Notes: generated from the letters alone by a model not told the origin. Shown: positions 4,171 to 44,422, counted from the first letter of the stretch. The stretch is DNA of 56,253 nt from Macrostomum lignano (GCA_002269645.1 NIVC01003578.1:1-56253), one strand, 5' to 3'. Made by a program: numbers and translations.

Positions 4171-7139
4171 CACGCCTATGCAGAAGCTGAAAAATGGGGA
4201 AAGAAAATTCCCTAAGAAACTAATGCTTTTCCCAGCCCCAAGGACCTATGCAGATTTCAAAAACAGTGTCAGACAAATCTAATCGCCTTGTCAAAAATGG
4301 TAATATGAATTTTTATATTATATGCAAATTACATGTAAGATGATAGATATTTAAGGCGAAACCCATCGATAATATTAATGTTAATATAAGTTCGTAGTTT
4401 TAATATTATTTTTAATCATTAAAGGAACGTGCAAATGTATTAGTATTAATATTATAAAATGAGAACCATGCACTTATTATTGCTAATGTCCGTATGGAAT
4501 AAAGTGCGCATGGATATTAAGTACACAAGCTAAATCCTAGAAATCTTGGCAGGCATGAAAATGCTTGACATCAAATATGGCTGGAATTGTAGCTAACAAC
4601 TGCGCGCAGCAGGCATTCTGCATACTGCAAATGCCCCAGAGGCCTGCAAAACCGCTGCCACGTCGAACGAAAGTCGCTGTGTGCAGACTCGACTGCCTGC
4701 TCACTGAAGGTCCCAAGGCCTGAGTTGAATCGCTCGCAGAACTCCGGAACATGGTGGAAAAGGGCGTGCATCTTAGGTGTCGGCACCAGCTTCAGTTCAG
4801 CGCAGCAGGATTCCAGCTGGGCAATCTTCTGGCAAAAGTCGCTCATCAGCTGTTGCCCAAAGCATGCTTGGCGAACAGCATCGAATGCCATGAGAGCAGA
4901 CGCATAGCCCTGGAGCCTTGATGGCAGGTTGCTCTTGAGCTCTTGAGCTTTAAGCAGCAATCTGACACACGCAGGGCCTTCCAGACACCCGCCGTGGTAC
5001 TGCTCGCGACAGATTCCAGCTGAATGCGCCCACTTGTATGCCTTGTCGTCGCCTCAAGCTGAGTTCAGCTGATCGAGCAGTTTGTTGGTCACACCAAGCA
5101 TGATGTGCAGCTCTGGTGGTGGCACGAGGTCCAGCATTGGCGTAGAATCAGCCCCAGGGAGAAGAGGCTGTCTGACACAGCTTGCGTAGTTTCTTGCCAG
5201 TCGCTGGCAGCTACCAGCAGCCTCGAATGCCGTGGCCATCCGACGAATGGATCCAAGGGTTCTTATGGAACCGGCAACTTGCCACGGCGCCTGCCCCTCA
5301 CAGTAGAGACAAGGATGAGCTGCGGCATGACTTTGAAGGCCACACAGGATGTTGGCTAGCTTGAAGTCGCAAGCGACTGTGAACTTAATCGATGTCAAGT
5401 CTAGCTCATCTAGAAGTGCTCGCACATTTGCATAGTTCTCCTGGACATCCTCAGCAATCGCGATGATAAACAGTTTTTTTACGCCAAAGTTGCTTATTCG
5501 CGACTCCCTGCTCAGCTTCTTAGGTGTGGACTCTGCCTGTGGTTCGGTAGGCAGTACTGGGGCGACACTAAGGCAGATTTTTAGCGAGCCACCACCTCCG
5601 TCCATCCCCAGCTTCAATCTCACATCGAACTCACTAAATCCTCGCTTTGAGCAAATGAAGCTCAGCAGTCCCTGCAGATCGGGGCATATGACGGAACATC
5701 TTGTGGTATCAGTAAAGCTGCCACCTGAGGACTTTTGAGTGAATTTGAGCTGCCGCATCTCAAAAAAACTCTCCGCGATGCTGCCTGCGGCTGCCAGAGC
5801 TGCCCGCAGTCCGGGTTGCACGGCCTTACGACTGCCCTCCGCCTGCCTGATAATTGTGGCTGCCATGTTTGTCTGCCGGTCACTCAGATTGAGAGATGTC
5901 TTTAACGTTACTAGTGTCTCGGTCCTCAGCGCTCTCTGCTCATTTGAATCACTTGCATGCCTCAGCTGCATTGGTGGGCCACCGGTGGCGCTGGAAATAG
6001 AAGCCGTTGATCCATGTCCTGATGCTGCTGCTGCTCTTAGCTTTTCACGCATCACGTCATGAGCGATGTGCTCTTTTGATGTAGGGCTGAGCGTGCGCAG
6101 GTACTGCAACTTGCTGGAGACGCTGCACTCGTGCCTTAGGCCTTTGCCCACAAGTGAGTGGCACCTAGTGCAGCGCTTCTCCGAGTCTCTGTCCTGGCTT
6201 CGAGTTGTTTCTGCAGGTCGTCCTTGGGGCAATTTATGGTTGGCCCGGCTGCTGTCAGACATGTATGGGTGCCAGACCGCCACCCGCTTGTTTGATGGGC
6301 TGGAAACTACCTGGCAGATACAGCAGGAGCAGTGCGGATGCTCACGTGTGAGTTGTGGCAAAACCTCCAAATCTGCAACAATTTGAAGGTATGGCAGTCG
6401 AGCAGGCAGTTCTTGCGGTACAGGTGACGTCTGTGACTGCAATTTCTTGATGCAGCAGCTGCACATGCCTCCTGGCAGAGTATTACGGATGTAGGCATGA
6501 CAGAATTCTGACAGGATAAATTGCTCGATGAGTTCTGCCTGAGCAGCTGAAATAACGCGATCGGCTTTGCGGAAGCAGAGGATGCAGCACCAGATACGAT
6601 TCTCTTCATGTGTGCGTCGAAAGTTTGGCATCGCGAGGCCAGAGAACTGATTTGAGTACTGAGGGTAATTGTTTCAATTGACTGCAACTTTATTTTCAAA
6701 GGAAGTCTGCGTGTTAGCAAACTTGTGATAAGAGGCATGTTCTACTTTATGAATGTACATAGTCTGTTCATTGTTTCTCAATCCCTTAATCACAATAGAT
6801 CTCAATAAATATGTACATTTGAGTTGTCTGCCAAAATTTCTATCTAATAATGTACAGCATTATATAACGCCCTTAAATTTATGCTCTAAACTTTGCAATT
6901 GATGCCTGCTCTTGTTACGCAATTGTTTTCAGTACTTGCAATGGCGCAACTGACGAATCTAATACTGAACATGCAGCTGAGAACACATAATTTCAATTTT
7001 CCATTCTATTATTTTTGGACAAGGCGATTAGATTTGTCTGACACTGTTTTTGGAATCTGCATGGGTCCTTGGGGCTGGGAAAAGCATTAGTTTCTTAGGG
7101 AATTTTCTTTCCCCATTTTTCAGCTTCTGCATAGGCGTG
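4171..7139 (-). mobile_element. Chapaev-type (CMC superfamily) DNA transposon, full length
   Basis: ~127-bp TIRs (4171-4297 and 7012-7139) with 5'-CAC…GTG-3' termini, a 4-bp TSD TACT on both sides, and an internal transposase. Confidence 0.9.
4571..6631 (-). pseudogene. Chapaev transposase (~686 codons) with a single in-frame TGA at 5054-5056
   Basis: ORFs 5054..6631 and 4571..4960 are in the same frame (LNSA*GDDKAYKW…). N-terminal H-x7-C-x2-C…P-x3-C-x2-C zinc finger, LGMDGGGG, ACDFK…HPCLYC, PPPELH, TPKMH and SEQAVESAH are RAG1/Transib/Chapaev-like DDE motifs. Confidence 0.88.
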
Positions 7140-7517
7140 TACTGAACTGAAAGTAGAAAGCTGTTTTGCTAAGTATATATGCCTGAGTGGCCCATCTAGT
7201 TATTGTATCTGTGGCCTAGACAGGGAGAGAAAACAGAGTAAACAGAGACAACGAAGGCATGCACACGGAAGGCCTGTGACGGAATTGTAGAGTAAAGTAA
7301 GCCAGCCTGCATCAAACCAATTTTAACAATACGCATGTGCTATTGTGAGAGACGTCAGTGAAACCTTGGAGGTAATCCACCTATACTAAATATATAATTA
7401 AAACTTCATAAACTGGACAATCGATAACAAGAAGTGGCAAACGGACTCGAGATCCACCGGCCACACCCATGTTCGCATGAAAAAATGGCAGGTGTTAGCA
7501 GACGTGACGAGCGCATT

Positions 7518-8478
7518 GGGGCCTAAAGTGTCCAACACGCCGGTTTTTCTGCCTTTGAGGCTCTCCAGCATGCATGAATTCTACGCGTGCGGAATTGTTC
7601 AGAAGCTTTGCAAATAATTTTCATGATTTTCTGATGGGGCCTGAAGTGTCCAACACGCCGATTTCTTGTGCCTTGGGGCTCTCGACCATGAATGAATTAT
7701 TCTACGCGTGCAGGTGTTCAGAAGCTTTGCAAATAATTTTCATGATTTTCTGATGGGGCCTGAAGTGTCCAACACGCCGATTTCTTGTGCCTTGGGGCTC
7801 TCGACCATGAATGAATTATTCTACGCGTGCGGAATTGTTCAGAAGCTTTGCAAATAATTTTAATGATTTTCTGATGGGGCCTGAAGTGTCCAACACGCCG
7901 ATTTCTTGTGCCTTGGGGCTCTCGACCATGAATGAATTATTCTACGCGTGCGGAATTGTTCAGAAGCTTTGCAAATAATTTTCATGATTTTCTGATGGGG
8001 CCTGAAGTGTCCAACACGCCGATTTCTTGTGCCTTGGGGCTCTCGACCATGAATGAATTATTCTACGCGTGCAGAAGTGTTCAGAAGCTTTGCAAATAAT
8101 TTTCATGATTTTCTGATGGGGCCTGAAGTGTCCAACACGCCGATTTCTTGTGCCTTGGGGCTCTCGACCATGAATGAATTATTCTACGCGTGCAGAAGTG
8201 TTCAGAAGCTTTGCAAATAATTTTCATGATTTTCTGATGGGGCCTGAAGTGTCCAACACGCCGATTTCTTGTGCCTTGGGGCTCTCGACCATGAATGAAT
8301 TATTCTACGCGTGCAGAAGTGTTCAGAAGCTTTGCAAATAATTTTCATGATTTTCTGATGGGGCCTGAAGTGTCCAACACGCCGATTTCTTGTGCCTTGG
8401 GGCTCTCGACCATGAATGAATTATTCTACGCGTGCAGAAGTGTTCAGAAGCTTTGCAAATAATTTTCATGATTTTCTG
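7518..8478. repeat. ~121-bp satellite, ~8 tandem copies
   Basis: GGGGCCTGAAGTGTCCAACACGCCGATTTCTTGTGCC…TTTTCATGATTTTCTGAT recurs every ~120-121 nt. Confidence 0.96.
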
Positions 8479-8752
8479 AGGATCTACATGTCGGTGGGAT
8501 TTGCTCGTGTGCAAACGTACTGTCGGGATCCTCGATGAACTGTTTCACCACTAAACGCTTTCACATTAAATGTCCCCACGAATGTGCAAGCTATAAACCA
8601 AATCTGTAAGTTGTATGACCTTGGTGGTCGTTAGCAGCACAGTATAAAATGCGAGTGACTCACTCGAAAGGCAAAATCTAAATTTTGATTATACATTCAA
8701 GTCTTGTGTATTTTATTAATCCAGCGCATACTCAGTTTCGCACGGCGTTTGC

Positions 8753-9051
8753 CTACTCTTTATAGAAAAACGCCAACTCAATAATGATGACCTTGTGATA
8801 TGGCTTCGGCGTGACCTCCATTGCTTGCGCATTCGCGCATTCAAAGTTATTGTACCGCCTGAACGTTGGGAAGTGTTTCTCCTTGCCGGATGGCAGGCAT
8901 CGGAAATTCAAGTTCTCTGCGCTGCTTCTGGCGTTTGACTTTGCCATTAAAAGAAACTTTTTTATATCAACTGTCTTCGAAAACGTGTAAAACAGAAAGT
9001 CACGCCCGGGACCATCAGCGTAAGCGACTCCGTACGACCACACATTCAAGT
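8753..9051 (-). CDS. Probable terminal exon of the giant Cys-rich gene (beta-rich ~99-aa domain)
   Basis: Minus-strand acceptor CTATAG at 9053-9052 is phase 1, matching donor G|GTGAG at 9382/9381. Reads DLNVWSYGVAYADGPGRDFLFYTF…HKVIIIELAFFYKE*; AATAAA on the minus strand at 8717-8712. Confidence 0.6.
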
Positions 9052-9381
9052 CTATAGAATACCTGCACGTTTTCGATATGCCGTCTTTAGAAGAGCACTC
9101 GATATTAACTCGATCTAAATGTCGGTGGGAAAGTGGATATAATTTTTATTCACGTTTTTATAAGTTCCAATATAAGTAAATTATGAGTACCGTCCCGAAC
9201 AGATGTCTAAAAATAGCTCCAAAGCTGGTATCCCGTCCTACTGGCACAGGGACTGCCTCAGGCCACAACTTGTGACGCTCGATTAGCAATAAACTCCTGT
9301 CAGGTCAAGTCGTTGACAATGTCCCCAAAAAGCTAACTACAAAAAAGTAAAACGGAAAATAAATTTATAAAATCAGCTCAC

Positions 9382-12300
9382 CATAACATTTATATTTTGT
9401 GAGTGTCGGGGTGAACTCGGGGCACTCGTCGCATATGCTCATACCAGATCGATATGACAAATTGTTCTCCAAGTTGCACTGTATGCATTCGGTAGCCCGC
9501 TGAATACTGGATCGCGTGCCAGGGGGGCAGGGCGTGCAGGTGCTACTACCAGTTTTGTTCGTGAAGTAGCCAGGGAAACAATCAAAGCATTTGTCTGAAC
9601 CAGGGCTTGGCGCGTATTGCCCTACCCGGCAAAGACTGCAACGCGTAGAGCCAGGCTCCTCAGCCACGCTGCCAGGGGGCACATCGTGCAGCTAGAGGTG
9701 CCCTCCCGATCTGCAAAAGTGCCCCCGAACATTGAATGCAGTGCCTTGATCCAGCAGGCGAAAAATGACCCTTGGGGCACAAGCGGCAGGACAAAGCACC
9801 CGAACGGCTCCAGCTGCCTGCATTGCATAACTCGCACAAAGAGGCACCGCTATGGCCGCTGTATCTGCCAGGCGGACAAGGTTTGCACTCACTTGAGCCG
9901 TTAGAATTAGCAAAAGTTCCAGGAGAACATCGCCTGCAAGAAGAAGATCCAGCAGACGAGGAAAATGATCCAGGGATGCAGGCAGTACACGCACTTGAAC
10001 CAAGTCCACTCCAGGTGCCTACGGGACAAGGATTATAGGAGGTCGAACCGACTCCATTTATAAAATAGCCAGCAGGACTAGGGGTGCATTCTATTGAATT
10101 CAAAGTCGAAGAAAAATATCCAGCAGGACACTTGGTGCATTCCTTGGACCCCTTCTTGTTGGCGAAGCTACCCGGTGGACACTTAGTGCAGGCGCTTAAC
10201 CCGGCTCGGTCAGCAATGCTTCCTGCCGGGCACTGGGTGCATGCCGAAGAGCCGACAGTTGAGATTGTTCCAGGCTCGCAGTTCGTACACGCGGCCGCGC
10301 CTTTACCGCTCCACGTGCCTGCAGGACACGGTTTAGCGCTTGTCGAGCCAGTCTTGTCGACGAATGATCCCGGTGGACTCGGTGTACACTTGCTAGATCC
10401 GGCGATCGCAAACGTTCCCGCCTTGCACTTGGTCGGCTCGGAGGCGCCGTTGGTACACACGCTTCCAGCAGGACACTTGGTGCATTCCTTGGACCCCTTC
10501 TTGTTGGCGAAGCTACCCGGTGGACACTTAGTGCAGGCGCTTAACCCGGCTCGGTCAGCAATGCTTCCTGCCGGGCACTGGGTGCATGCCGAAGAGCCGA
10601 CAGTTGAGATTGTTCCAGGCTCGCAGTTCGTACACGCGGCCGCGCCTTTACCGCTCCACGTGCCTGCAGGACACGGTTTAGCGCTTGTCGAGCCAGTCTT
10701 GTCGACGAATGATCCCGGTGGACTCGGTGTACACTTGCTAGATCCGGCGATCGCAAACGTTCCCGCCTTGCACTTGGTCGGCTCGGAGGCGCCGTTGGTA
10801 CACACGCTTCCAGCAGGACACTTGGTGCATTCCTTGGACCCCTTCTTGTTGGCGAAGCTACCCGGTGGACACTTAGTGCAGGCGCTTAACCCGGCTCGGT
10901 CAGCAATGCTTCCTGCCGGGCACTGGGTGCATGCCGAAGAGCCGACAGTTGAGATTGTTCCAGGCTCGCAGTTCGTACACGCGGCCGCGCCTTTACCGCT
11001 CCACGTGCCTGCAGGACACGGTTTAGCGCTTGTCGAGCCAGTCTTGTCGACGAATGATCCCGGTGGACTCGGTGTACACTTGCTAGATCCGGCGATCGCA
11101 AACGTTCCCGCCTTGCACTTGGTCGGCTCGGAGGCGCCGTTGGTACACACGCTTCCAGCAGGACACTTGGTGCATTCCTTGGACCCCTTCTTGTTGGCGA
11201 AGCTACCCGGTGGACACTTAGTGCAGGCGCTTAACCCGGCTCGGTCAGCAATGCTTCCTGCCGGGCACTGGGTGCATGCCGAAGAGCCGACAGTTGAGAT
11301 TGTTCCAGGCTCGCAGTTCGTACACGCGGCCGCGCCTTTACCGCTCCACGTGCCTGCAGGACACGGTTTAGCGCTTGTCGAGCCAGTCTTGTCGACGAAT
11401 GATCCCGGTGGACTCGGTGTACACTTGCTAGATCCGGCGATCGCAAACGTTCCCGCCTTGCACTTGGTCGGCTCGGAGGCGCCGTTGGTACACACGCTTC
11501 CAGCAGGACACTTGGTGCATTCCTTGGACCCCTTCTTGTTGGCGAAGCTACCCGGTGGACACTTAGTGCAGGCGCTTAACCCGGCTCGGTCAGCAATGCT
11601 TCCTGCCGGGCACTGGGTGCATGCCGAAGAGCCGACAGTTGAGATTGTTCCAGGCTCGCAGTTCGTACACGCGGCCGCGCCTTTACCGCTCCACGTGCCT
11701 GCAGGACACGGTTTAGCGCTTGTCGAGCCAGTCTTGTCGACGAATGATCCCGGTGGACTCGGTGTACACTTGCTAGATCCGGCGATCGCAAACGTTCCCG
11801 CCTTGCACTTGGTCGGCTCGGAGGCGCCGTTGGTACACACGCTTCCAGCAGGACACTTGGTGCATTCCTTGGACCCCTTCTTGTTGGCGAAGCTACCCGG
11901 TGGACACTTAGTGCAGGCGCTTAACCCGGCTCGGTCAGCAATGCTTCCTGCCGGGCACTGGGTGCATGCCGAAGAGCCGACAGTTGAGATTGTTCCAGGC
12001 TCGCAGTTCGTACACGCGGCCGCGCCTTTACCGCTCCACGTGCCTGCAGGACACGGTTTAGCGCTTGTCGAGCCAGTCTTGTCGACGAATGATCCCGGTG
12101 GACTCGGTGTACACTTGCTAGATCCGGCGATCGCAAACGTTCCCGCCTTGCACTTGGTCGGCTCGGAGGCGCCGTTGGTACACACGCTTCCAGCAGGACA
12201 CTTGGTGCATTCCTTGGACCCCTTCTTGTTGGCGAAGCTACCCGGTGGACACTTAGTGCAGGCGCTTAACCCGGCTCGGTCAGCAATGCTTCCTGCCGGG

Positions 12301-15300
12301 CACTGGGTGCATGCCGAAGAGCCGACAGTTGAGATTGTTCCAGGCTCGCAGTTCGTACACGCGGCCGCGCCTTTACCGCTCCACGTGCCTGCAGGACACG
12401 GTTTAGCGCTTGTCGAGCCAGTCTTGTCGACGAATGATCCCGGTGGACTCGGTGTACACTTGCTAGATCCGGCGATCGCAAACGTTCCCGCCTTGCACTT
12501 GGTCGGCTCGGAGGCGCCGTTGGTACACACGCTTCCAGCAGGACACTTGGTGCATTCCTTGGACCCCTTCTTGTTGGCGAAGCTACCCGGTGGACACTTA
12601 GTGCAGGCGCTTAACCCGGCTCGGTCAGCAATGCTTCCTGCCGGGCACTGGGTGCATGCCGAAGAGCCGACAGTTGAGATTGTTCCAGGCTCGCAGTTCG
12701 TACACGCGGCCGCGCCTTTACCGCTCCACGTGCCTGCAGGACACGGTTTAGCGCTTGTCGAGCCAGTCTTGTCGACGAATGATCCCGGTGGACTCGGTGT
12801 ACACTTGCTAGATCCGGCGATCGCAAACGTTCCCGCCTTGCACTTGGTCGGCTCGGAGGCGCCGTTGGTACACACGCTTCCAGCAGGACACTTGGTGCAT
12901 TCCTTGGACCCCTTCTTGTTGGCGAAGCTACCCGGTGGACACTTAGTGCAGGCGCTTAACCCGGCTCGGTCAGCAATGCTTCCTGCCGGGCACTGGGTGC
13001 ATGCCGAAGAGCCGACAGTTGAGATTGTTCCAGGCTCGCAGTTCGTACACGCGGCCGCGCCTTTACCGCTCCACGTGCCTGCAGGACACGGTTTAGCGCT
13101 TGTCGAGCCAGTCTTGTCGACGAATGATCCCGGTGGACTCGGTGTACACTTGCTAGATCCGGCGATCGCAAACGTTCCCGCCTTGCACTTGGTCGGCTCG
13201 GAGGCGCCGTTGGTACACACGCTTCCAGCAGGACACTTGGTGCATTCCTTGGACCCCTTCTTGTTGGCGAAGCTACCCGGTGGACACTTAGTGCAGGCGC
13301 TTAACCCGGCTCGGTCAGCAATGCTTCCTGCCGGGCACTGGGTGCATGCCGAAGAGCCGACAGTTGAGATTGTTCCAGGCTCGCAGTTCGTACACGCGGC
13401 CGCGCCTTTACCGCTCCACGTGCCTGCAGGACACGGTTTAGCGCTTGTCGAGCCAGTCTTGTCGACGAATGATCCCGGTGGACTCGGTGTACACTTGCTA
13501 GATCCGGCGATCGCAAACGTTCCCGCCTTGCACTTGGTCGGCTCGGAGGCGCCGTTGGTACACACGCTTCCAGCAGGACACTTGGTGCATTCCTTGGACC
13601 CCTTCTTGTTGGCGAAGCTACCCGGTGGACACTTAGTGCAGGCGCTTAACCCGGCTCGGTCAGCAATGCTTCCTGCCGGGCACTGGGTGCATGCCGAAGA
13701 GCCGACAGTTGAGATTGTTCCAGGCTCGCAGTTCGTACACGCGGCCGCGCCTTTACCGCTCCACGTGCCTGCAGGACACGGTTTAGCGCTTGTCGAGCCA
13801 GTCTTGTCGACGAATGATCCCGGTGGACTCGGTGTACACTTGCTAGATCCGGCGATCGCAAACGTTCCCGCCTTGCACTTGGTCGGCTCGGAGGCGCCGT
13901 TGGTACACACGCTTCCAGCAGGACACTTGGTGCATTCCTTGGACCCCTTCTTGTTGGCGAAGCTACCCGGTGGACACTTAGTGCAGGCGCTTAACCCGGC
14001 TCGGTCAGCAATGCTTCCTGCCGGGCACTGGGTGCATGCCGAAGAGCCGACAGTTGAGATTGTTCCAGGCTCGCAGTTCGTACACGCGGCCGCGCCTTTA
14101 CCGCTCCACGTGCCTGCAGGACACGGTTTAGCGCTTGTCGAGCCAGTCTTGTCGACGAATGATCCCGGTGGACTCGGTGTACACTTGCTAGATCCGGCGA
14201 TCGCAAACGTTCCCGCCTTGCACTTGGTCGGCTCGGAGGCGCCGTTGGTACACACGCTTCCAGCAGGACACTTGGTGCATTCCTTGGACCCCTTCTTGTT
14301 GGCGAAGCTACCCGGTGGACACTTAGTGCAGGCGCTTAACCCGGCTCGGTCAGCAATGCTTCCTGCCGGGCACTGGGTGCATGCCGAAGAGCCGACAGTT
14401 GAGATTGTTCCAGGCTCGCAGTTCGTACACGCGGCCGCGCCTTTACCGCTCCACGTGCCTGCAGGACACGGTTTAGCGCTTGTCGAGCCAGTCTTGTCGA
14501 CGAATGATCCCGGTGGACTCGGTGTACACTTGCTAGATCCGGCGATCGCAAACGTTCCCGCCTTGCACTTGGTCGGCTCGGAGGCGCCGTTGGTACACAC
14601 GCTTCCAGCAGGACACTTGGTGCATTCCTTGGACCCCTTCTTGTTGGCGAAGCTACCCGGTGGACACTTAGTGCAGGCGCTTAACCCGGCTCGGTCAGCA
14701 ATGCTTCCTGCCGGGCACTGGGTGCATGCCGAAGAGCCGACAGTTGAGATTGTTCCAGGCTCGCAGTTCGTACACGCGGCCGCGCCTTTACCGCTCCACG
14801 TGCCTGCAGGACACGGTTTAGCGCTTGTCGAGCCAGTCTTGTCGACGAATGATCCCGGTGGACTCGGTGTACACTTGCTAGATCCGGCGATCGCAAACGT
14901 TCCCGCCTTGCACTTGGTCGGCTCGGAGGCGCCGTTGGTACACACGCTTCCAGCAGGACACTTGGTGCATTCCTTGGACCCCTTCTTGTTGGCGAAGCTA
15001 CCCGGTGGACACTTAGTGCAGGCGCTTAACCCGGCTCGGTCAGCAATGCTTCCTGCCGGGCACTGGGTGCATGCCGAAGAGCCGACAGTTGAGATTGTTC
15101 CAGGCTCGCAGTTCGTACACGCGGCCGCGCCTTTACCGCTCCACGTGCCTGCAGGACACGGTTTAGCGCTTGTCGAGCCAGTCTTGTCGACGAATGATCC
15201 CGGTGGACTCGGTGTACACTTGCTAGATCCGGCGATCGCAAACGTTCCCGCCTTGCACTTGGTCGGCTCGGAGGCGCCGTTGGTACACACGCTTCCAGCA

Positions 15301-18300
15301 GGACACTTGGTGCATTCCTTGGACCCCTTCTTGTTGGCGAAGCTACCCGGTGGACACTTAGTGCAGGCGCTTAACCCGGCTCGGTCAGCAATGCTTCCTG
15401 CCGGGCACTGGGTGCATGCCGAAGAGCCGACAGTTGAGATTGTTCCAGGCTCGCAGTTCGTACACGCGGCCGCGCCTTTACCGCTCCACGTGCCTGCAGG
15501 ACACGGTTTAGCGCTTGTCGAGCCAGTCTTGTCGACGAATGATCCCGGTGGACTCGGTGTACACTTGCTAGATCCGGCGATCGCAAACGTTCCCGCCTTG
15601 CACTTGGTCGGCTCGGAGGCGCCGTTGGTACACACGCTTCCAGCAGGACACTTGGTGCATTCCTTGGACCCCTTCTTGTTGGCGAAGCTACCCGGTGGAC
15701 ACTTAGTGCAGGCGCTTAACCCGGCTCGGTCAGCAATGCTTCCTGCCGGGCACTGGGTGCATGCCGAAGAGCCGACAGTTGAGATTGTTCCAGGCTCGCA
15801 GTTCGTACACGCGGCCGCGCCTTTACCGCTCCACGTGCCTGCAGGACACGGTTTAGCGCTTGTCGAGCCAGTCTTGTCGACGAATGATCCCGGTGGACTC
15901 GGTGTACACTTGCTAGATCCGGCGATCGCAAACGTTCCCGCCTTGCACTTGGTCGGCTCGGAGGCGCCGTTGGTACACACGCTTCCAGCAGGACACTTGG
16001 TGCATTCCTTGGACCCCTTCTTGTTGGCGAAGCTACCCGGTGGACACTTAGTGCAGGCGCTTAACCCGGCTCGGTCAGCAATGCTTCCTGCCGGGCACTG
16101 GGTGCATGCCGAAGAGCCGACAGTTGAGATTGTTCCAGGCTCGCAGTTCGTACACGCGGCCGCGCCTTTACCGCTCCACGTGCCTGCAGGACACGGTTTA
16201 GCGCTTGTCGAGCCAGTCTTGTCGACGAATGATCCCGGTGGACTCGGTGTACACTTGCTAGATCCGGCGATCGCAAACGTTCCCGCCTTGCACTTGGTCG
16301 GCTCGGAGGCGCCGTTGGTACACACGCTTCCAGCAGGACACTTGGTGCATTCCTTGGACCCCTTCTTGTTGGCGAAGCTACCCGGTGGACACTTAGTGCA
16401 GGCGCTTAACCCGGCTCGGTCAGCAATGCTTCCTGCCGGGCACTGGGTGCATGCCGAAGAGCCGACAGTTGAGATTGTTCCAGGCTCGCAGTTCGTACAC
16501 GCGGCCGCGCCTTTACCGCTCCACGTGCCTGCAGGACACGGTTTAGCGCTTGTCGAGCCAGTCTTGTCGACGAATGATCCCGGTGGACTCGGTGTACACT
16601 TGCTAGATCCGGCGATCGCAAACGTTCCCGCCTTGCACTTGGTCGGCTCGGAGGCGCCGTTGGTACACACGCTTCCAGCAGGACACTTGGTGCATTCCTT
16701 GGACCCCTTCTTGTTGGCGAAGCTACCCGGTGGACACTTAGTGCAGGCGCTTAACCCGGCTCGGTCAGCAATGCTTCCTGCCGGGCACTGGGTGCATGCC
16801 GAAGAGCCGACAGTTGAGATTGTTCCAGGCTCGCAGTTCGTACACGCGGCCGCGCCTTTACCGCTCCACGTGCCTGCAGGACACGGTTTAGCGCTTGTCG
16901 AGCCAGTCTTGTCGACGAATGATCCCGGTGGACTCGGTGTACACTTGCTAGATCCGGCGATCGCAAACGTTCCCGCCTTGCACTTGGTCGGCTCGGAGGC
17001 GCCGTTGGTACACACGCTTCCAGCAGGACACTTGGTGCATTCCTTGGACCCCTTCTTGTTGGCGAAGCTACCCGGTGGACACTTAGTGCAGGCGCTTAAC
17101 CCGGCTCGGTCAGCAATGCTTCCTGCCGGGCACTGGGTGCATGCCGAAGAGCCGACAGTTGAGATTGTTCCAGGCTCGCAGTTCGTACACGCGGCCGCGC
17201 CTTTACCGCTCCACGTGCCTGCAGGACACGGTTTAGCGCTTGTCGAGCCAGTCTTGTCGACGAATGATCCCGGTGGACTCGGTGTACACTTGCTAGATCC
17301 GGCGATCGCAAACGTTCCCGCCTTGCACTTGGTCGGCTCGGAGGCGCCGTTGGTACACACGCTTCCAGCAGGACACTTGGTGCATTCCTTGGACCCCTTC
17401 TTGTTGGCGAAGCTACCCGGTGGACACTTAGTGCAGGCGCTTAACCCGGCTCGGTCAGCAATGCTTCCTGCCGGGCACTGGGTGCATGCCGAAGAGCCGA
17501 CAGTTGAGATTGTTCCAGGCTCGCAGTTCGTACACGCGGCCGCGCCTTTACCGCTCCACGTGCCTGCAGGACACGGTTTAGCGCTTGTCGAGCCAGTCTT
17601 GTCGACGAATGATCCCGGTGGACTCGGTGTACACTTGCTAGATCCGGCGATCGCAAACGTTCCCGCCTTGCACTTGGTCGGCTCGGAGGCGCCGTTGGTA
17701 CACACGCTTCCAGCAGGACACTTGGTGCATTCCTTGGACCCCTTCTTGTTGGCGAAGCTACCCGGTGGACACTTAGTGCAGGCGCTTAACCCGGCTCGGT
17801 CAGCAATGCTTCCTGCCGGGCACTGGGTGCATGCCGAAGAGCCGACAGTTGAGATTGTTCCAGGCTCGCAGTTCGTACACGCGGCCGCGCCTTTACCGCT
17901 CCACGTGCCTGCAGGACACGGTTTAGCGCTTGTCGAGCCAGTCTTGTCGACGAATGATCCCGGTGGACTCGGTGTACACTTGCTAGATCCGGCGATCGCA
18001 AACGTTCCCGCCTTGCACTTGGTCGGCTCGGAGGCGCCGTTGGTACACACGCTTCCAGCAGGACACTTGGTGCATTCCTTGGACCCCTTCTTGTTGGCGA
18101 AGCTACCCGGTGGACACTTAGTGCAGGCGCTTAACCCGGCTCGGTCAGCAATGCTTCCTGCCGGGCACTGGGTGCATGCCGAAGAGCCGACAGTTGAGAT
18201 TGTTCCAGGCTCGCAGTTCGTACACGCGGCCGCGCCTTTACCGCTCCACGTGCCTGCAGGACACGGTTTAGCGCTTGTCGAGCCAGTCTTGTCGACGAAT

Positions 18301-21300
18301 GATCCCGGTGGACTCGGTGTACACTTGCTAGATCCGGCGATCGCAAACGTTCCCGCCTTGCACTTGGTCGGCTCGGAGGCGCCGTTGGTACACACGCTTC
18401 CAGCAGGACACTTGGTGCATTCCTTGGACCCCTTCTTGTTGGCGAAGCTACCCGGTGGACACTTAGTGCAGGCGCTTAACCCGGCTCGGTCAGCAATGCT
18501 TCCTGCCGGGCACTGGGTGCATGCCGAAGAGCCGACAGTTGAGATTGTTCCAGGCTCGCAGTTCGTACACGCGGCCGCGCCTTTACCGCTCCACGTGCCT
18601 GCAGGACACGGTTTAGCGCTTGTCGAGCCAGTCTTGTCGACGAATGATCCCGGTGGACTCGGTGTACACTTGCTAGATCCGGCGATCGCAAACGTTCCCG
18701 CCTTGCACTTGGTCGGCTCGGAGGCGCCGTTGGTACACACGCTTCCAGCAGGACACTTGGTGCATTCCTTGGACCCCTTCTTGTTGGCGAAGCTACCCGG
18801 TGGACACTTAGTGCAGGCGCTTAACCCGGCTCGGTCAGCAATGCTTCCTGCCGGGCACTGGGTGCATGCCGAAGAGCCGACAGTTGAGATTGTTCCAGGC
18901 TCGCAGTTCGTACACGCGGCCGCGCCTTTACCGCTCCACGTGCCTGCAGGACACGGTTTAGCGCTTGTCGAGCCAGTCTTGTCGACGAATGATCCCGGTG
19001 GACTCGGTGTACACTTGCTAGATCCGGCGATCGCAAACGTTCCCGCCTTGCACTTGGTCGGCTCGGAGGCGCCGTTGGTACACACGCTTCCAGCAGGACA
19101 CTTGGTGCATTCCTTGGACCCCTTCTTGTTGGCGAAGCTACCCGGTGGACACTTAGTGCAGGCGCTTAACCCGGCTCGGTCAGCAATGCTTCCTGCCGGG
19201 CACTGGGTGCATGCCGAAGAGCCGACAGTTGAGATTGTTCCAGGCTCGCAGTTCGTACACGCGGCCGCGCCTTTACCGCTCCACGTGCCTGCAGGACACG
19301 GTTTAGCGCTTGTCGAGCCAGTCTTGTCGACGAATGATCCCGGTGGACTCGGTGTACACTTGCTAGATCCGGCGATCGCAAACGTTCCCGCCTTGCACTT
19401 GGTCGGCTCGGAGGCGCCGTTGGTACACACGCTTCCAGCAGGACACTTGGTGCATTCCTTGGACCCCTTCTTGTTGGCGAAGCTACCCGGTGGACACTTA
19501 GTGCAGGCGCTTAACCCGGCTCGGTCAGCAATGCTTCCTGCCGGGCACTGGGTGCATGCCGAAGAGCCGACAGTTGAGATTGTTCCAGGCTCGCAGTTCG
19601 TACACGCGGCCGCGCCTTTACCGCTCCACGTGCCTGCAGGACACGGTTTAGCGCTTGTCGAGCCAGTCTTGTCGACGAATGATCCCGGTGGACTCGGTGT
19701 ACACTTGCTAGATCCGGCGATCGCAAACGTTCCCGCCTTGCACTTGGTCGGCTCGGAGGCGCCGTTGGTACACACGCTTCCAGCAGGACACTTGGTGCAT
19801 TCCTTGGACCCCTTCTTGTTGGCGAAGCTACCCGGTGGACACTTAGTGCAGGCGCTTAACCCGGCTCGGTCAGCAATGCTTCCTGCCGGGCACTGGGTGC
19901 ATGCCGAAGAGCCGACAGTTGAGATTGTTCCAGGCTCGCAGTTCGTACACGCGGCCGCGCCTTTACCGCTCCACGTGCCTGCAGGACACGGTTTAGCGCT
20001 TGTCGAGCCAGTCTTGTCGACGAATGATCCCGGTGGACTCGGTGTACACTTGCTAGATCCGGCGATCGCAAACGTTCCCGCCTTGCACTTGGTCGGCTCG
20101 GAGGCGCCGTTGGTACACACGCTTCCAGCAGGACACTTGGTGCATTCCTTGGACCCCTTCTTGTTGGCGAAGCTACCCGGTGGACACTTAGTGCAGGCGC
20201 TTAACCCGGCTCGGTCAGCAATGCTTCCTGCCGGGCACTGGGTGCATGCCGAAGAGCCGACAGTTGAGATTGTTCCAGGCTCGCAGTTCGTACACGCGGC
20301 CGCGCCTTTACCGCTCCACGTGCCTGCAGGACACGGTTTAGCGCTTGTCGAGCCAGTCTTGTCGACGAATGATCCCGGTGGACTCGGTGTACACTTGCTA
20401 GATCCGGCGATCGCAAACGTTCCCGCCTTGCACTTGGTCGGCTCGGAGGCGCCGTTGGTACACACGCTTCCAGCAGGACACTTGGTGCATTCCTTGGACC
20501 CCTTCTTGTTGGCGAAGCTACCCGGTGGACACTTAGTGCAGGCGCTTAACCCGGCTCGGTCAGCAATGCTTCCTGCCGGGCACTGGGTGCATGCCGAAGA
20601 GCCGACAGTTGAGATTGTTCCAGGCTCGCAGTTCGTACACGCGGCCGCGCCTTTACCGCTCCACGTGCCTGCAGGACACGGTTTAGCGCTTGTCGAGCCA
20701 GTCTTGTCGACGAATGATCCCGGTGGACTCGGTGTACACTTGCTAGATCCGGCGATCGCAAACGTTCCCGCCTTGCACTTGGTCGGCTCGGAGGCGCCGT
20801 TGGTACACACGCTTCCAGCAGGACACTTGGTGCATTCCTTGGACCCCTTCTTGTTGGCGAAGCTACCCGGTGGACACTTAGTGCAGGCGCTTAACCCGGC
20901 TCGGTCAGCAATGCTTCCTGCCGGGCACTGGGTGCATGCCGAAGAGCCGACAGTTGAGATTGTTCCAGGCTCGCAGTTCGTACACGCGGCCGCGCCTTTA
21001 CCGCTCCACGTGCCTGCAGGACACGGTTTAGCGCTTGTCGAGCCAGTCTTGTCGACGAATGATCCCGGTGGACTCGGTGTACACTTGCTAGATCCGGCGA
21101 TCGCAAACGTTCCCGCCTTGCACTTGGTCGGCTCGGAGGCGCCGTTGGTACACACGCTTCCAGCAGGACACTTGGTGCATTCCTTGGACCCCTTCTTGTT
21201 GGCGAAGCTACCCGGTGGACACTTAGTGCAGGCGCTTAACCCGGCTCGGTCAGCAATGCTTCCTGCCGGGCACTGGGTGCATGCCGTTATGCCACTCGTG

Positions 21301-21971
21301 CTGTAAGAGCTGAATGTTCCTGGGTTGCAGACAATGCAGTTTTGATTTCCTTCTTGGTATTTGTAGCTTCCAGCAGGGCATGGCACGCAGAGGTTACTTG
21401 TTGTCACGCTTTTTTGATGGCCTACGGGACACCTTGGTATACAGTCATATCTTTGGCTACCTTTTTTATCATCAAAAGTTGGTGATTTGATTTTGACGTT
21501 GCGACACTCTTTGCAGGCCATACTGTCGTATGGTTTATCGCAGTCAGTGCACTCTTTGTGACAATTAGGTTTGCAAATACCGTTTTTCAAGGTATAGTTT
21601 GCATTTTTGCATAGTTTTCTTTTTGTGACGACTAAGTTGAGAAAAGAAAAAACTTTGTAACCTTTTCTAGAGTGCATCGAAAGTCTGGACACGCGAGTTC
21701 GCTGGACTCCAGGCACCGTGCTGTTAGGAGGCTTTTCTTCGTTTAAAATATTTCGCAAAAACTGTTGCGTCACAGTTTTTGGCAGTTTGTCTTTCAAGTT
21801 GGCGAAAGTTTCACGTTTGAGCAGGGCCCCATCGGCGCCACCAGCTGCAGCGCCACCAGCTGCAGCGCCACCATCTCTTGGGTTTCGTTGCCCATATTCC
21901 GCTGTCGTCTTTCCGCTGGTGGCATCCAAGCTGAGGGTGAGCAAAATGAATGCCACTGACGCAAGTCTCAT
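9382..21971 (-). CDS. Giant secreted cysteine-rich repeat protein (signal peptide, furin-like repeat, hundreds of ephrin-receptor-like/GCC2-GCC3-type CxxCPxG repeats), exon 1
   Basis: 4119-aa ORF. ATG at 21971 starts MRLASVAFILLTLSLDATSG (signal-peptide-like); then CHKECTDCDKPYDSMACKECRN…CIPRCPVG (furin-like); then C-x2-C-P-x-G-[ST]-[FYW] repeats. Adding one G (~9724) and one C (~9678) in homopolymer runs restores the frame into ORF 9365..9682. Confidence 0.9.
10120..21286. repeat. Coding tandem array, 345-bp unit x ~32.4
   Basis: The ORF track repeats every 345 nt (10196 to 20891, 32 identical short ORFs); I saw no substitutions between units by eye. Confidence 0.97.
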
Positions 21972-25975: not shown

Positions 25976-26558
25976 AGAATGCTAAGTTTTTATGTTATAT
26001 TTCTTATTTATTAGGTAACTAATTATTAAAATACAAATATATAAACTTATAATTATTAATGATACCATTAGATTATGAATATATGGCAAGGCAGTTAGAT
26101 TGAGTTTTGGTCATAGATATCCAGAAACATAATTTTAAATGTTTAGTAAAAGGTTGAAGGATTAAAACAGAGGATATATTTTGAAGTTATTAAAGTTAAC
26201 TTATTTTCAATGTGGCTAGCCAACAACTTGCCCTTAGGCCTTGAATTTATTTGGCTACAGGTATTTGCCTTAAGAATTAAGAATACATGAGGTTTAAACA
26301 AAAATTAAAGCAAATAAGAAAATTCATTAAATATTGATAGGCTGTCAATACTACATAAAAGAATTAGTCAAGTTTACTATTTAGGCTTATGAGAACTAGC
26401 CTTGGTCATTATTTGACTAGAAGATGAATATATAACTAGCAAACTAAAAATAGCATATGATCAATTCACATTTTTCTAGATTATTCAACTGGCAAGCTAT
26501 ACAAGCAACTAAATTGGACAAAGTATCCTGGTCATTAGATGAAATAATTTGGCCAATT

Positions 26559-27343
26559 GGGCCATTCCATATAATTATGGTCGTAACATAACAGACTATT
26601 TTCACTAATAAAATGAAATCTAATAATAGAATATACTAAACCAATATTTTGAATGAAAGATTTTTTGTCAAGAATATGTTTATAAAGTTTCATATAGATA
26701 TCATCATTAGTATAGATGCTATTAAACCTTGAATGGCACTTATGGTCGTAACAACAGGATTTTTGACATATAGAAACTAAAAGGCAAAAGTCTTATAACA
26801 TTTTCATTTTTGATATTTTGCAATAATTTTTTTAAATTTGACTAAGAACATCTTTAGAAGTCATAATGCTCTTTTATTAGAATATATAAACTCAAAAAGG
26901 CAACAAAGATAAAAGAAAAGGTAGCCTTATGGTCGTAACATTTTGGTTGTAACATATTTTTTTCTGTCAATTCAGTAACTTTGAAGTACTAATATATTAA
27001 AAATATAATAGATTATATGGTTGCTAATGTTTTTATCTGATGATGCAAGTACTATAATTTTATATATAGTTTGTTTTAACCTTCTAAAGCTTTCTATTTG
27101 TTTTTAAAAGGTACATAAACTTAATGATGTCTTTTGCTTAGAAAATGTCTAATTTTTTACAAAAATAATTTTTTGCCAATTGATAACATACTAATCCAAC
27201 ATTTTATAATTTATTTATTCTTAGATTGTATACATTATATACAAAAAAGATTTGGTAAAAAAATGGCCAATAAGGCAACGACAAGCAAAAATATTGACTT
27301 TTTTCTATTTTCCAAATATGTCCATCTTATATGGAATGGGCCC
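26559..27343. mobile_element. Possible degenerate MITE (GGG…CCC termini)
   Basis: GGGCCATTCCATATAA at 26559 is inverted at ~27327-27343 (TTATATGGAATGGGCCC); ATT flanks both sides. Confidence 0.45.
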
Positions 27344-28995
27344 ATTGGATTTGGCCATTTTGCTAAAAAACCACATACTTTTGCTAGTAAAAAAGTTGTT
27401 CATTCTATTGTAATGCTTTATTAGATTCAAAATCTATTAAATCCCTTTGATATTCCAGTGCTCTTGAGAGTTGGTTGACCTTATACTATTTTGTTTTAAA
27501 AGTTGATTTATTTACTTGCTAGTTCAAAAAATTAGAAAATAAATCCTAGGAAAAACCAAATATTGGATACTATATAAACATATTTTATTTTGCATTTATA
27601 CTCATAATAACAATTTAGGCTAAGGGTTGGCAAACTTTTTATATTGATGGCTAGATATAGGGGTTGAAATAGAGGGGTGTTTTTAAACTGTGTGAGGGAT
27701 TTTAAATTTCCACTGTTTCCATGGTAATGGAGTTCTATACTAAAGATTTGTTTGAATGCGCCTATCGTCTCCCCCTCCCCCTTTTTGGTTTGGTATAAAT
27801 AGAAGCAATTTTTGCACCTAGAGAGGCGAACACTTTTCTTTTGCCAACCGATCTTTCGGTTTAAAGGTGATTTGCCTAGCAAATTGAGGAGTTTTTCCAT
27901 CTTTCCTTATTTGCTGGAATCAAGAGCAAATACTCATTGGACAGGTAGAAGTTACCAAGAGCACAAGACAAACAGTCTAACAGTCAATAGCAAACTTGCA
28001 AAGATCAGAGGCATTATTCAGCCAATTGACAAGGGAGAAATATCCCAATAGAACTATTCAAACTGAACAGCCAATGGGAAGTTGTATATGACAAGAGTAA
28101 ATCCATAAGAGGAAATTGAAATTCACTGGGCAACCTCAATCCATTGGAGGGCGCTGCTTTAAGACTGAGTCACCCCCTTCTTTTCCTAGCTAAACAGTGT
28201 CTTGCCGCTCGGGCACTGTGTGCTACCAGGGCAATCTGTACTTACGTGAAAGCTCATAATCTCAAACTCAGTCACACCATATTTTAGTAGTTTATGATGA
28301 ATCTACAAAATAATAGCTAATTTCGTGGAATTCTAGAATTATAGCAAATTTTAGCCTAGTATAACTTGGTGTTAGCAGTGAGATCTAAAGAATAATTTAA
28401 ACACCCCTACAACAACTTGGTGGCACAGTGGGATAAAATAAAATAATAGTAAAGAGGCCTACAACAGGGTCATACTATAAAGCTGTTGTAGCATAAGTTT
28501 GATCATAAGTTGGAACTTTTACACTGTAGAGATAGGAGCTAAGAATGATCTTATCTTACAATGGCTTTATAGAATTGGCCCACATACTATAGGGTAGGAT
28601 GATAAGATGGAATAGAAGAGAGGAGAGAAGAGAATAGAGATTAGAAAGAGGAGAGCTAAGAAGAGTTACAAATCTTAAGTAGGCCAGATTGCTATTATGA
28701 AGTTTCAAAGGACTCCAGGGTGGGACCACAGGTTTAGACTTATTTTTGTCAAATTTTGAATTTCATTATTCTTGTTTTTTAAGACTATCTAGACCTATCA
28801 TTTCTGATAACAATTAATATGTTGCTCATATATACTAAAGGCTTATTTTATATTAGTTTAACTGTTTGAATAAATGAATATAGTAGGTCTTCTTACAGTT
28901 TAAATTTTATTGATTCAGTTGCTTTACTCAAAGCCATGGTGACTTATTAGCTTGATATTTTATAAAATTGCATTACACCACATGCATTTTTGCAG

Positions 28996-30888: not shown

Positions 30889-31670
30889 GAAACCAAAAAT
30901 ATGTACAGATCCACTTGTTCACTGCACACTTTGGTGGGCCAGTTTTTTCTTAATTTTACATCCGTCGTCTTATATACTAAAACTGAAAAGTTGTGTAGCC
31001 ATTTGCTAAATGACTTTCATTCCTTATCTTTATCTAACTATCCAACTTTCTAGCCTGCCCAGCATTTCCTATGTGTCAGTGTCTATTTAATCTGAGAAAA
31101 TGTTTACCAATCTAGGCCGGCAATCGCGGACTCGACGCGTTAGAGAAACCAGTTGCCAAGGTAAACAAATTGGATGGTGACGCAGTTACTATGGTGTGGT
31201 TATTATTATTTTATACCTAATGTGTATTGTGTTGCAATATTATCTTGATGGACTCGATGTGCGCACTGGAATTTTCATTACTGCCGGTTTTGAGGCGGTG
31301 CCGGGCGGTTAATCAGCTGTTCATTCTCAAGTGTTTCTCTGTCCATTTCGGTATTGCGCAGTGCCTCCGCCTGCCTGTGTCAATTATATGTATCGGCACT
31401 GGGCAGCTATCTATTTAATGTAGTCCACAAGCAGTGCCTTTTTGATTCAGCTGTGTTATAGTCCCGGCTGCCGCTTGATTCGCAGCCTCGCACCAGTGGT
31501 TTCTTACCGGTAATCGGTCTTCATCCGGCCTTGACCCTCGGTGTCGTGTTGTCTGTCTCACCCATTCAATAAGCCATTGTGAAGGCACTTTTTGTTCATC
31601 CAATTGCCTGTCGGTGTCGGTCTTGACTGATTCTGGTGTTGCCGCGACAAGCAGGCTCGCAGAACCCGAA

Positions 31671-34600: not shown

Positions 34601-34751
34601 AGCCAGCGGGTCGGACTCCAAGACGTTCTACTTTGGCGACAAGTCGCTGGTGAGCAAGCGCGAAGAGCGCGAGCACTGGGCCAGCCGGTACTTCAATCGG
34701 CCCAATATTGAAATCATCGGCCGGCTGGGCACCGACACGGACGCCAGCCAG
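31671..34751 (+). CDS. LIM-domain gene: very large low-complexity first coding exon
   Basis: Uninterrupted ~1,030-codon GC-rich frame (ATG 31671), Ser/Pro/Gln-rich, ending CAG|GTAAAT in phase 0; contains GKVRALASRFQEQ, similar to helical motifs in later exons. Linkage to the LIM exons is inferred from phase and orientation. Confidence 0.75.
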
Positions 34752-43511: not shown

Positions 43512-43574
43512 GTATGGCGTTTGGCTGTGCATTTTTCTGGGGGGTTTCTGTTGCTAAGCTGCTAAATAGTGAAT

Positions 43575-44422
43575 GCTAAAGACTCAAGATAGTAAATGCT
43601 GAAGACTCAAGATAGTGAATGGTGAAGACTCAAGATAGTGAACGGTGAAGACTCAAGATAGTGAATGCTGAAGACTCAAGATAGTGAATGGTGAAGACTC
43701 AAGATAGTGAATGCTGAAGACTCAAGATAGTGAATGCTGAAGACTCAAGATAGTGAATGGTGAAGACTCAAGATAGTGAATGGTGAAGACTCAAGATAGT
43801 GAATGGTGAAGACTCAAGATAGTGAATGGTGAAGACTCAAGATAGTGAATGCTGAAGACTCAAGATAGTGAATGGTGAAGACTCAAGATAGTGAATGGTG
43901 AAGACTCAAGATAGTGAATGCTGAAGACTCAAGATAGTGAATGGTGAAGACTCAAGATAGTGAATGCTGAAGACTCAAGATAGTGAATGGTGAAGACTCA
44001 AGATAGTGAATGCTGAAGACTCAAGATAGTGAATGGTGAAGACTCAAGATAGTGAATGGTGAAGACTCAAGATAGTGAATGGTGAAGACTCAAGATAGTG
44101 AATGCTGAAGACTCAAGATAGTGAATGGTGAAGACTCAAGATAGTGAATGGTGAAGACTCAAGATAGTGAATGCTGAAGACTCAAGATAGTGAATGGTGA
44201 AGACTCAAGATAGTGAATGCTGAAGACTCAAGATAGTGAATGGTGAAGACTCAAGATAGTGAATGGTGAAGACTCAAGATAGTGAATGCTGAAGACTCAA
44301 GATAGTGAATGCTGAAGACTCAAGATAGTGAATGCTGAAGACTCAAGATAGTGAATGGTGAAGACTCAAGATAGTGAATTGTGAAGACTCAAGATAGTGA
44401 ATTGTGAAGACTCAAGATAGTG
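43575..44422. repeat. 23-bp minisatellite (GAAGACTCAAGATAGTGAATG(G/C)T)n in the intron splitting the LIM domain
   Basis: Visible array of ~36 copies. Confidence 0.97.

Follow-up and report, generated by a model that had tools for sequence, protein, structure and literature searches.

A giant tandem-repeat gene of Macrostomum lignano encodes a predicted secreted, disulfide-rich rod protein

We analyzed a stretch of 56,253 nucleotides (nt) from the flatworm Macrostomum lignano (GCA_002269645.1, NIVC01003578.1:1-56253; hereafter the window), in which an initial annotation, made from the sequence alone, had proposed a giant secreted protein of about 4,300 amino acids (aa) built from about 32 copies of a seven-part, 115-aa module. 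A scan for open reading frames (ORFs) revealed two overlapping ORFs of ~4,000 codons at 9.7-22.0 kb, one per strand. The gene is carried by the minus strand and extends from an ATG at 21971 to a TAG at 8755-8753, so that its outer coordinates match the annotated interval 8753-21971 exactly. From 5' to 3' it comprises a signal-peptide-like segment, a leader with a furin-like segment, 32 units of 345 bp, about 20 diverged repeats, a phase-1 intron, and a small last exon. It is a genuine, expressed, two-exon Macrostomum gene, with the following features (a slash marks an exon–intron boundary):

21912..21971 (-), start codon and signal-peptide-like segment MRLASVAFILLTLSLDATSG; ATG at 21971-21969, the first ATG of the stop-free stretch, with A at -3
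21282..21911 (-), leader (TVTQQFLRNILNEE), pre-furin remnant, furin-like Cys-rich segment and first Ephrin_rec_like hairpins, aa 21-230
10242..21281 (-), 32 head-to-tail units of 345 bp/115 aa, aa 231-3910, with seven CxxCPxG hairpins of 16-17 aa each
10119..10241 (-), 33rd unit, its first 123 nt identical to the array, followed by divergence (Tandem Repeats Finder and unit comparison)
9382..10118 (-), about 20 diverged Ephrin_rec_like hairpins, Tyr-containing and with few Lys, terminating in the family motif CIQCNLENNLSYRSGMSICDECP...KYKCY
9722..9726 (-), G5 run, first frame break, shift -1 (three-frame translation)
9675..9679 (-), C5 run, second frame break, shift -1 (three-frame translation)
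9660..9662 (-), TGA ending the as-assembled ORF (4,103 aa), reached only via the first frame break
9115..9381 (-), intron, phase 1, G/GTGAGC ... TTTAG/; an alternative acceptor CTAAAG/ places the intron end at 9085
8753..9114 (-), last exon with a C-terminal beta-domain of ~110-120 aa (DRVNIECSSKDGISKTCRYSIDLNVWSYG...VIIIELAFFYKE) and TAG at 8755-8753
8712..8717 (-), AATAAA, 36 nt past the stop codon
10084..21306 (+), 3,740-aa antisense ORF arising from the repeat; homology is confined to the minus strand

Tandem Repeats Finder resolved the array at a period of 345 with 32.4 copies, 100% matches, and no indels (score 22336), which is far beyond chance. All 32 units are base-for-base identical, with zero differences in 11,163 bp including the 123 nt of the 33rd. 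The seven sub-repeats described initially, when joined, correspond exactly to residues 230-344 with a spacing of 17, 17, 16, 16, 17, 16, and 16 (115 in total), and the composition given for the unit was likewise reproduced: 12 Cys, 11 Lys and 1 Arg, five acidic residues (2 Asp and 3 Glu), no Tyr, and no N-glycosylation sequon in the array. Each unit thus carries a net charge of +7, is Ser/Thr-rich as well as Lys-rich, and holds an even number of Cys in its seven CxxCPxG hairpins. The sub-repeats are 24-59% identical among themselves, and the neighbouring repeats that were not amplified share ~39% identity with the unit. Because the units are identical while the sub-repeats have diverged, we propose that an old module of seven hairpins was amplified very recently or is still being homogenised. 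Both the count of 32 and the perfect identity are those of the assembly. The plus-strand ORF at 10084-21306 was not accepted as a gene: one antisense frame of the unit happens to be free of stop codons, which accounts for this ORF, and a Pfam search of its 3,740 aa returned no match above threshold.

Downstream of the array, the repeat pattern goes on in the second frame past the G5 run and in the third frame past the C5 run. One G added at 9726-9722 restores the canonical hairpin CIQCSGGTFADREGTSSC, and one C added at 9679-9675 restores a second such hairpin, CTMCPPGSVAEEPGSTRC, and gives 98 open codons up to the splice donor. We therefore read both frame breaks as probable sequence errors. 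The unit contains no homopolymer of at least five bases, whereas both breaks lie in 5-base runs, a site type absent from the unit; homopolymer errors would thus strike the flank and not the array. The codons past the breaks (98 and ~110) are open and keep the family motifs described below. The initial claim that 12.6 kb are encoded in one exon consequently holds once one base is added at each of the two runs, but not for the sequence as assembled, in which the frame stops at 9660. The first exon ends with a consensus donor (TAT G/GTGAGC at 9382/9381). Several acceptors are in frame, and the two main candidates let exon 2 start at 9114 or 9084; the former yields CY/DRVNIECSSKDGISKTCRYSID, restores a Cys that is conserved in paralogues, and makes the Cys count even (434).

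The frame-repaired product comprises 4,317 aa (exon 2 from 9114) or 4,307 aa (from 9084), as expected from the initial size estimate, with ~421 kDa, 433-434 Cys, and a net charge of +255. An exact look-up of the as-assembled 4,103-aa product revealed no entry on record. The N-terminal segment, predicted to be a signal peptide by the n/h/c-region rule, is the sole hydrophobic stretch of the protein. In line with the proposed lack of a transmembrane (TM) segment, 19-residue Kyte-Doolittle windows outside this segment were never TM-like; the best means (1.0-1.4) all lay at residues 1-6, and the repaired product has no hydrophobic C-terminal tail. N-X-S/T sequons are confined to regions outside the array.

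The assignment of the repeats to the GCC2/GCC3 type proved correct. The corresponding Pfam family PF07699 (Ephrin_rec_like, formerly GCC2_GCC3; gathering cut-off 23.1 bits) matched two units with 84.6 bits (E 4e-24), the C-terminal flank with 87.7 bits (E 4e-25), and the N-terminal part with 28.3 bits (aa 190-224). The TNFR_ELAPOR1 and NCD3G models overlap these calls. Pfam calls no furin-like domain in the N-terminal part, so that of the proposed signal-like start and furin-like Cys repeat, the start and the segment itself stand, the segment being conserved with M. lignano paralogues, whereas the domain call does not. When the unit was compared to all solved structures, the best match was the mastigoneme protein MST1 of Chlamydomonas (E 1.4e-43), followed by ELAPOR1 (E 1.7e-8). 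In MST1, the repeat tandem forms an extracellular spiral disulfide ladder with a spacing of ~11 Å that lends robustness to the filament (PMC10602792). By analogy, the ~245 CxxCPxG beta-hairpins of the gene product (224 of them in the 32 modules) would stack as a thin ladder with ~217 disulfides, and six disulfides per unit at the MST1 spacing would correspond to ~6.6 nm per unit and a rod of ~0.2-0.3 µm.

Several known proteins share this hairpin type with the gene product but differ in their remaining parts. MST1 of Chlamydomonas reinhardtii (PDB 8tx1, 8wa2, 9b4h) has a Cys-rich repeat tandem homologous in sequence; however, its tandem is short, it possesses nine Ig-like domains and a polyproline-II tail, it polymerises on cilia, and the two organisms are unrelated. 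Neither flank of the gene product gave an Ig-type Pfam match, and no Pro-rich tail is present. The metazoan proteins ELAPOR1/2 (KIAA1324 family), SCUBE1-3, and SVEP1 contain a handful of Ephrin_rec_like/TNFR-like hairpins; these membrane or matrix proteins are otherwise defined by different domains (MRH and a TM segment in ELAPOR1/2; EGF and CUB in SCUBE1-3; sushi, vWA, and pentraxin in SVEP1). Giardia variant-specific surface proteins (VSPs) and ciliate immobilisation antigens likewise consist of long CxxC repeat arrays and form an extended surface coat. The Pfam VSP match of the gene product was weak (21.1 bits, below the cut-off of 31.4), the VSP membrane anchor has no counterpart in it, as a hydrophobic C-terminus is lacking, and the origin here is a flatworm.

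Searching 5.8 billion proteins returned many matches in algae, oomycetes, and animals that were confined to the repeats, at ~30-35% identity. The top match, and the only one spanning 90% of the query, was the M. lignano protein BOX15_Mlig005822g1 (P0001). Further uncharacterised relatives from M. lignano are Mlig012635g1 (P0015), Mlig023775g1 (P0123), Mlig029702g1 (P0130), and Mlig025175g1-3 (P0124, P0133, P0134), and the gene product is collinear with P0001, P0015, P0123, and P0130. Its N-terminal part matches residues 938-1054 of P0130 with 38% identity (BLASTP, E 4e-24; the leader match is weak, E 0.014) and also aligns with P0015 and P0001. The family leader reads (I/V)T(K/Q)(E/Q)(I/F)L(K/R)(D/N)(L/I/M)LNE, and the furin-like segment contains C(F/K)(Q/E)CRNV. 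The hairpin run ends in the motif CxxC(D/N)L..(A/L)L...(S/T/I)GM..CD.CP followed by C(Y/H), which in the window takes the form CIQCNLENNLSYRSGMSICDECP...KCY (tblastn E 1e-5) and aligns with P0001, P0015, and P0121-P0127. The intron site is shared as well: it is in phase 1, one base past a Tyr codon, with TAT G/GTGAGC here and TAT C/GTAAGT in the P0001 gene. An exhaustive HMMER search for the terminal module among 1.84 billion representatives yielded 10 matches, and the eight that were checked by name (P0001 and seven others) are all from M. lignano.

As judged from these alignments, the gene thus falls into a small M. lignano family that shares its leader, terminal motif, C-terminal domain, and intron position, and the initial statement that it could not be assigned to an animal family does not hold; nor is it a "system", being a single gene. 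Signal peptide, leader, furin-like segment, hairpin run, terminal motif, phase-1 intron, and a beta-domain of ~110-150 aa that finishes with (A/I)E(V/I)AxYA are common to the gene and its paralogues. In contrast, the paralogues have 400-1,550 aa and 10-25 hairpins compared to ~245 hairpins here, at an identity of 23-38%; the gene has neither an MACPF nor a long middle domain, its C-terminal domain is shorter, and its amplified Lys-rich, Tyr-free module has no close counterpart among the proteins found. P0130 (1,548 aa), the longest member, is the only one to bear an MACPF domain, which lies between leader and rod (Pfam 55.3 bits). A tblastn search with its N-terminal 1,054 aa revealed no MACPF-like sequence in the window. 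Since the gene product aligns to P0130 residues 938-1054 and the window holds no MACPF, we regard the gene as an MACPF-less family member with a hugely expanded rod.

Two observations concern the paralogous loci. A fragment of an MACPF gene is annotated 5.4 kb upstream of P0015 on the same strand (NIVC01002678.1; 3510-4574 and 10001-12036). This fragment and P0015 are probably one gene, because P0130 combines MACPF and rod in one protein, as does a transcript ORF of 1,681 aa for which peptides were measured. Furthermore, tblastn of P0001 on its own locus (10001-12262) gave an alignment of 754 columns for 721 residues (95.6% identity). The locus seems to hold about one 33-aa repeat beyond the annotated protein; members of this family may therefore differ in repeat number, or an intron may have been annotated wrongly.

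The C-terminal domain had no Pfam or PDB sequence match and aligned with the C-terminus of P0001 at E 0.16 (tblastn). Its motif, C..(T/S)(I/V)D....(T/S)YG ... Y(K/R/T)(L/F) ... (A/I)E.A.Y, is present in the window in a divergent, shorter form, and every invariant residue of a seven-sequence alignment, of which the window domain is one, is kept. An AlphaFold2 model of the P0123 domain based on this alignment reached a pLDDT of 70.7 and a pTM of 0.70. Foldseek placed F5/8 type C, the fucose lectin of lectinolysin, CBM32, the muskelin discoidin domain, and APC10 at the top (E 1e-5 to 1e-3, best 1.5e-5; TM 0.5-0.6). From this model of a paralogue, the C-terminal domain is predicted to be a lectin-like, discoidin/CBM32-like beta-sandwich of the galactose-binding-domain-like type. 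This domain, the two frame breaks, the perfect identity at the DNA level with the caution it imposes on the assembly, and the antisense ORF are additions to the initial annotation.

Peptides of the unit have already been measured. The sequences CPAGSVCTNGASEPTK, TGSTSAKPCPAGTWSGK, and AGTFAIAGSSK, listed by Wunderer et al. 2019 (PMC6410801 Dataset S1, sheet Pull_down_Trypsin_1), are exact tryptic peptides of the unit, and the sample was a peanut-agglutinin (PNA) pull-down from the protein of 1,000 amputated M. lignano DV1 tails. They were assigned there to RNA1310_6488_2, a GCC2_GCC3 transcript model of 951 aa and 99.87 kDa with 9.25% coverage (PMC6410801). As 9.25% of 951 aa equals 88 residues, which corresponds to each peptide occurring twice, the transcript model from short reads contains two units versus 32 in the genome. 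The mass-spectrometric search for unit peptides that had been suggested thus finds three of them in existing data, and the absence of any transcript, named initially as a ground for refutation, is countered by the transcript model and the peptides. Eight peptides of the MACPF paralogue P0123/P0130 occur in the same sheet. Another M. lignano GCC2/GCC3 protein, RNA1310_25452_2 (457 aa, pI 8.9), was covered to 39% in this pull-down; its peptides CTECPAGSSSGPGAK and AGTFASSTGASK represent Lys-, Ser-, Gly-, and Ala-rich hairpins, unit-like in style.

With regard to function, we suggest that the signal peptide is removed and that a single chain of ~420 kDa would be secreted. This chain would form a long, thin, disulfide-laddered, polycationic rod, probably O-glycosylated, whose Lys-rich shaft would bind polyanionic glycans or surfaces in a multivalent manner, while the C-terminal domain would bind a sugar or another ligand. 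The product could then act as a multivalent cross-linking or cohesive fibre in the secretion of glands of the tail region. As for its origin, one seven-hairpin module would have been expanded in a family whose longest member still has MACPF. The picture of a very long, cationic, disulfide-stapled secreted protein drawn initially is supported by PF07699, the homology to MST1, the signal-like start, and the net charge of +255.

A precedent exists in the same animal. M. lignano produces giant secreted tandem-repeat proteins found in tail preparations, Mlig-ap1 with 5,407 aa and Mlig-ap2 with 14,794 aa (PMC6410801, PMC8621496), and the cationic Mlig-ap1 acts in cohesion and is antagonised by polyanions (PMC6410801). 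Both resemble the gene product in size, long regular repeats, high Cys content, and a lectin-type domain, Mlig-ap1 also in its positive charge, and both were, like the gene described here, invisible to short-read transcript assembly. They differ in their own parts, i.e., KR-rich regions, C-type lectin, vWD/C8/TIL, and EGF in Mlig-ap1, and 255- and 221-aa repeats, vWD, TIL, LDLa, and TSP-1 in Mlig-ap2 (PMC6410801). Pfam detected none of these domains in the flanks or the unit of the gene, and ap1 and ap2 as described lack an Ephrin_rec_like array. Identity with Mlig-ap1 or Mlig-ap2 was thus rejected on architecture.

Alternative readings of the locus itself concern assembly, reading frame, and source. 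The gene may be real and the array of 32 perfect copies may nevertheless owe part of its regularity to the assembly, with the copy number misjudged and differences erased by consensus or polishing. The lack of any difference across 11,163 bp, the 75-99% identity of the other long arrays in the window (two short ones excepted), and two probable single-base errors just 400-450 bp from the array, which mark the sequence as of draft quality, speak for this explanation. However, the other arrays in the window retain variants, so the assembler does not homogenise everything, and an indel-free interior is expected for a unit with the homopolymer content described above. Giant, highly regular arrays are moreover documented in M. 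lignano (Mlig-ap2, 21 x 255 aa and 25 x 221 aa; PMC6410801), and transcript models built from short reads are known to shorten arrays of this kind. We consider this explanation somewhat unlikely, and the identity of the protein would be unchanged under it. If, on the other hand, the frame breaks were real, the gene would encode a 4,103-aa protein without its last ~200 residues and the lectin-like domain, or be a young pseudogene copy. The assembled ORF does stop at 9660, homopolymer slippage also occurs as natural mutation, and recently duplicated gene copies are present in M. lignano. Nevertheless, at each break a 5-base run is one base short, the error for which long reads are best known; by our own estimate, 98 and ~110 downstream codons would stay open by chance with a probability of only ~(61/64)^208 = 5e-5; this stretch retains the Cys pattern and the family motif as well as the conserved intron and a poly(A) signal; and the peptides demonstrate that the unit is translated. 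Genuine frame breaks thus appear improbable to us. A contaminating protist or alga, raised initially as a possible refutation, could be suspected from the many repeat matches at 30-35% identity in green algae and oomycetes and from a best solved relative in Chlamydomonas. Its probability is close to nil, because the family modules flanking the array are Macrostomum-specific and the unit peptides were measured in M. lignano tails; the window stems from M. lignano or a very close relative.

With respect to function, a secreted cationic cross-linking or cohesive fibre, expressed from a two-exon gene, is our best explanation as a whole, and we assign it a probability of about 50%. Several points weigh against it. 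The frame is broken twice as assembled, and the perfect identity over 11 kb may in part be a product of assembly or polishing. AlphaFold2 performed poorly on 2.3 units without an alignment (pLDDT 56), and this low-confidence model was dropped from the fold search; the rod geometry is for this reason taken from homology only. The C-terminal domain of the window is ~30 residues shorter than those of the paralogues and 23-28% identical to them. Myosin and histone H1 appear in the same pull-down sheet, which weakens the case for PNA specificity and hence for O-glycosylation, and the unit peptides were not found in the examined parts of the footprint and tail datasets. A collapse of our model to two units gives 857-867 aa and 89.4 kDa, whereas the published RNA1310_6488_2 is 84-94 residues longer; no combination of the N-terminal part, k units, and the C-terminal part fits 951 aa and 99.87 kDa exactly, and the additional residues could derive from one more exon, from another 5' end, or from a duplicate of the gene. 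An immune or defence molecule, i.e., an MACPF-less offshoot of a perforin-like family that would use its long stalk and lectin-like head for binding and agglutinating microbes or the surfaces of prey, is a further option that we regard as unlikely. P0130 does join the same leader, rod, and C-terminal module with MACPF (Pfam 55.3 bits), an MACPF gene adjoins the paralogue P0015 at NIVC01002678.1, the C-terminal fold resembles lectin domains of bacterial toxins and CBM32 modules, and a polycationic shaft would bind microbial surfaces. However, no MACPF sequence lies in the window, the MACPF paralogue itself gives no functional support, and a 32-fold amplification of a charged module would be more typical of structural or adhesive proteins. 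Even less probable is a seminal-fluid protein of the prostate glands that is transferred at mating: two of 76 prostate-limited M. lignano transcripts are annotated as "GCC2 and GCC3 domain containing" (RNA815_14562, RNA815_18395; PMC5977470 Table S1), and the protein is present in tails, the site of these glands, but neither transcript has a sequence link to the locus and GCC2/GCC3 proteins are numerous in M. lignano. Mucus, adhesive, eggshell, and reproductive secretion had been named initially as candidate roles; of these, a quinone-tanned eggshell is unlikely, as the repeat has no Tyr.

Other elements of the window lie outside the gene. A 121-bp tandem array (7517-8479; 8 copies, 97% identity, the last 4 copies 100%) is located ~230 bp downstream of the gene's poly(A) signal, and minisatellites with periods of 13-55 bp are abundant (1417-2870, 43566-44423, 45125-46120, 47169-48294, 51156-51920, and 53487-54238). 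In total, Tandem Repeats Finder reported 33 rows with a score of at least 200 (identities 73-100%), which result in many spurious long ORFs in several frames. On the minus strand, a 539-codon ORF (5057-6673) with a Cys-rich N-terminal part and the C-terminal sequence ...HPCLYCEG...PPELHIMLG looks like a mobile-element protein; it had no Pfam match, and its C-terminal 139 aa gave matches of at most 49% identity (46% for the top-scoring one). A Ser/Pro/Gln-rich ORF of 1,093 codons on the plus strand (31479-34757) is situated in a GC-rich island (66% GC at 32-34 kb) and is overlapped by a long antisense ORF at 31758-33197; it had no Pfam match, and its last 400 residues had no homologue. Neither of these two ORFs is annotated anywhere. 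The region 26001-28000 is strongly AT-rich (28% GC) compared to 42-60% GC in the rest of the window. A blastn comparison of the window with two M. lignano loci was uninformative, revealing only simple repeats and a 116-nt match (84%; 28467-28582 versus NIVC01002678.1 13432-13547), which probably represents a dispersed repeat present at both loci. Scanning the window for Rfam families and tRNAs gave no matches.

The Pfam family of the repeat and the existence of giant tandem-repeat secreted proteins in M. lignano are already known. Undescribed are the family architecture (a leader, a Cys rod, and a discoidin-like end, to which MACPF may be added), the perfect 32-fold amplification of a Lys-rich seven-hairpin module, and the full length of the gene; the M. 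lignano gene and transcript identifiers gave no matches in the main texts of the literature. The locus also carries a warning, as perfect arrays yield giant antisense ORFs and neighbouring homopolymer errors truncate gene models. Temporary adhesion of flatworms is now explained by two giant proteins, which were recognised only once a long-read genome had joined fragmentary transcripts. The locus adds a third giant, cationic, Cys-rich tandem-repeat protein of M. lignano, whose peptides went unrecognised in published tail proteomics and whose public 951-aa transcript model under-represents the gene more than four-fold. As a well-delimited target, it lends itself to in situ hybridisation, RNAi, and mass spectrometry, and a natural, very long single-chain disulfide-ladder rod, as predicted here, is of interest for biomaterials. 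The finding also illustrates how, in a family that includes an MACPF protein, the repeat stalk can grow into something new by amplification. More speculatively, and with a probability we rate as low, the protein may be an overlooked structural component of a gland secretion, for example a third, cohesive fibre in the duo-gland adhesive, the cement, or the mucus, in which the stalk of a perforin-like (MACPF) defence protein would have been turned into a polycationic, lectin-headed disulfide-ladder rod of 0.2-0.3 µm. If true, this would be a molecular architecture new to biological glues or gel fibres, its length being tuned by a variable copy number.

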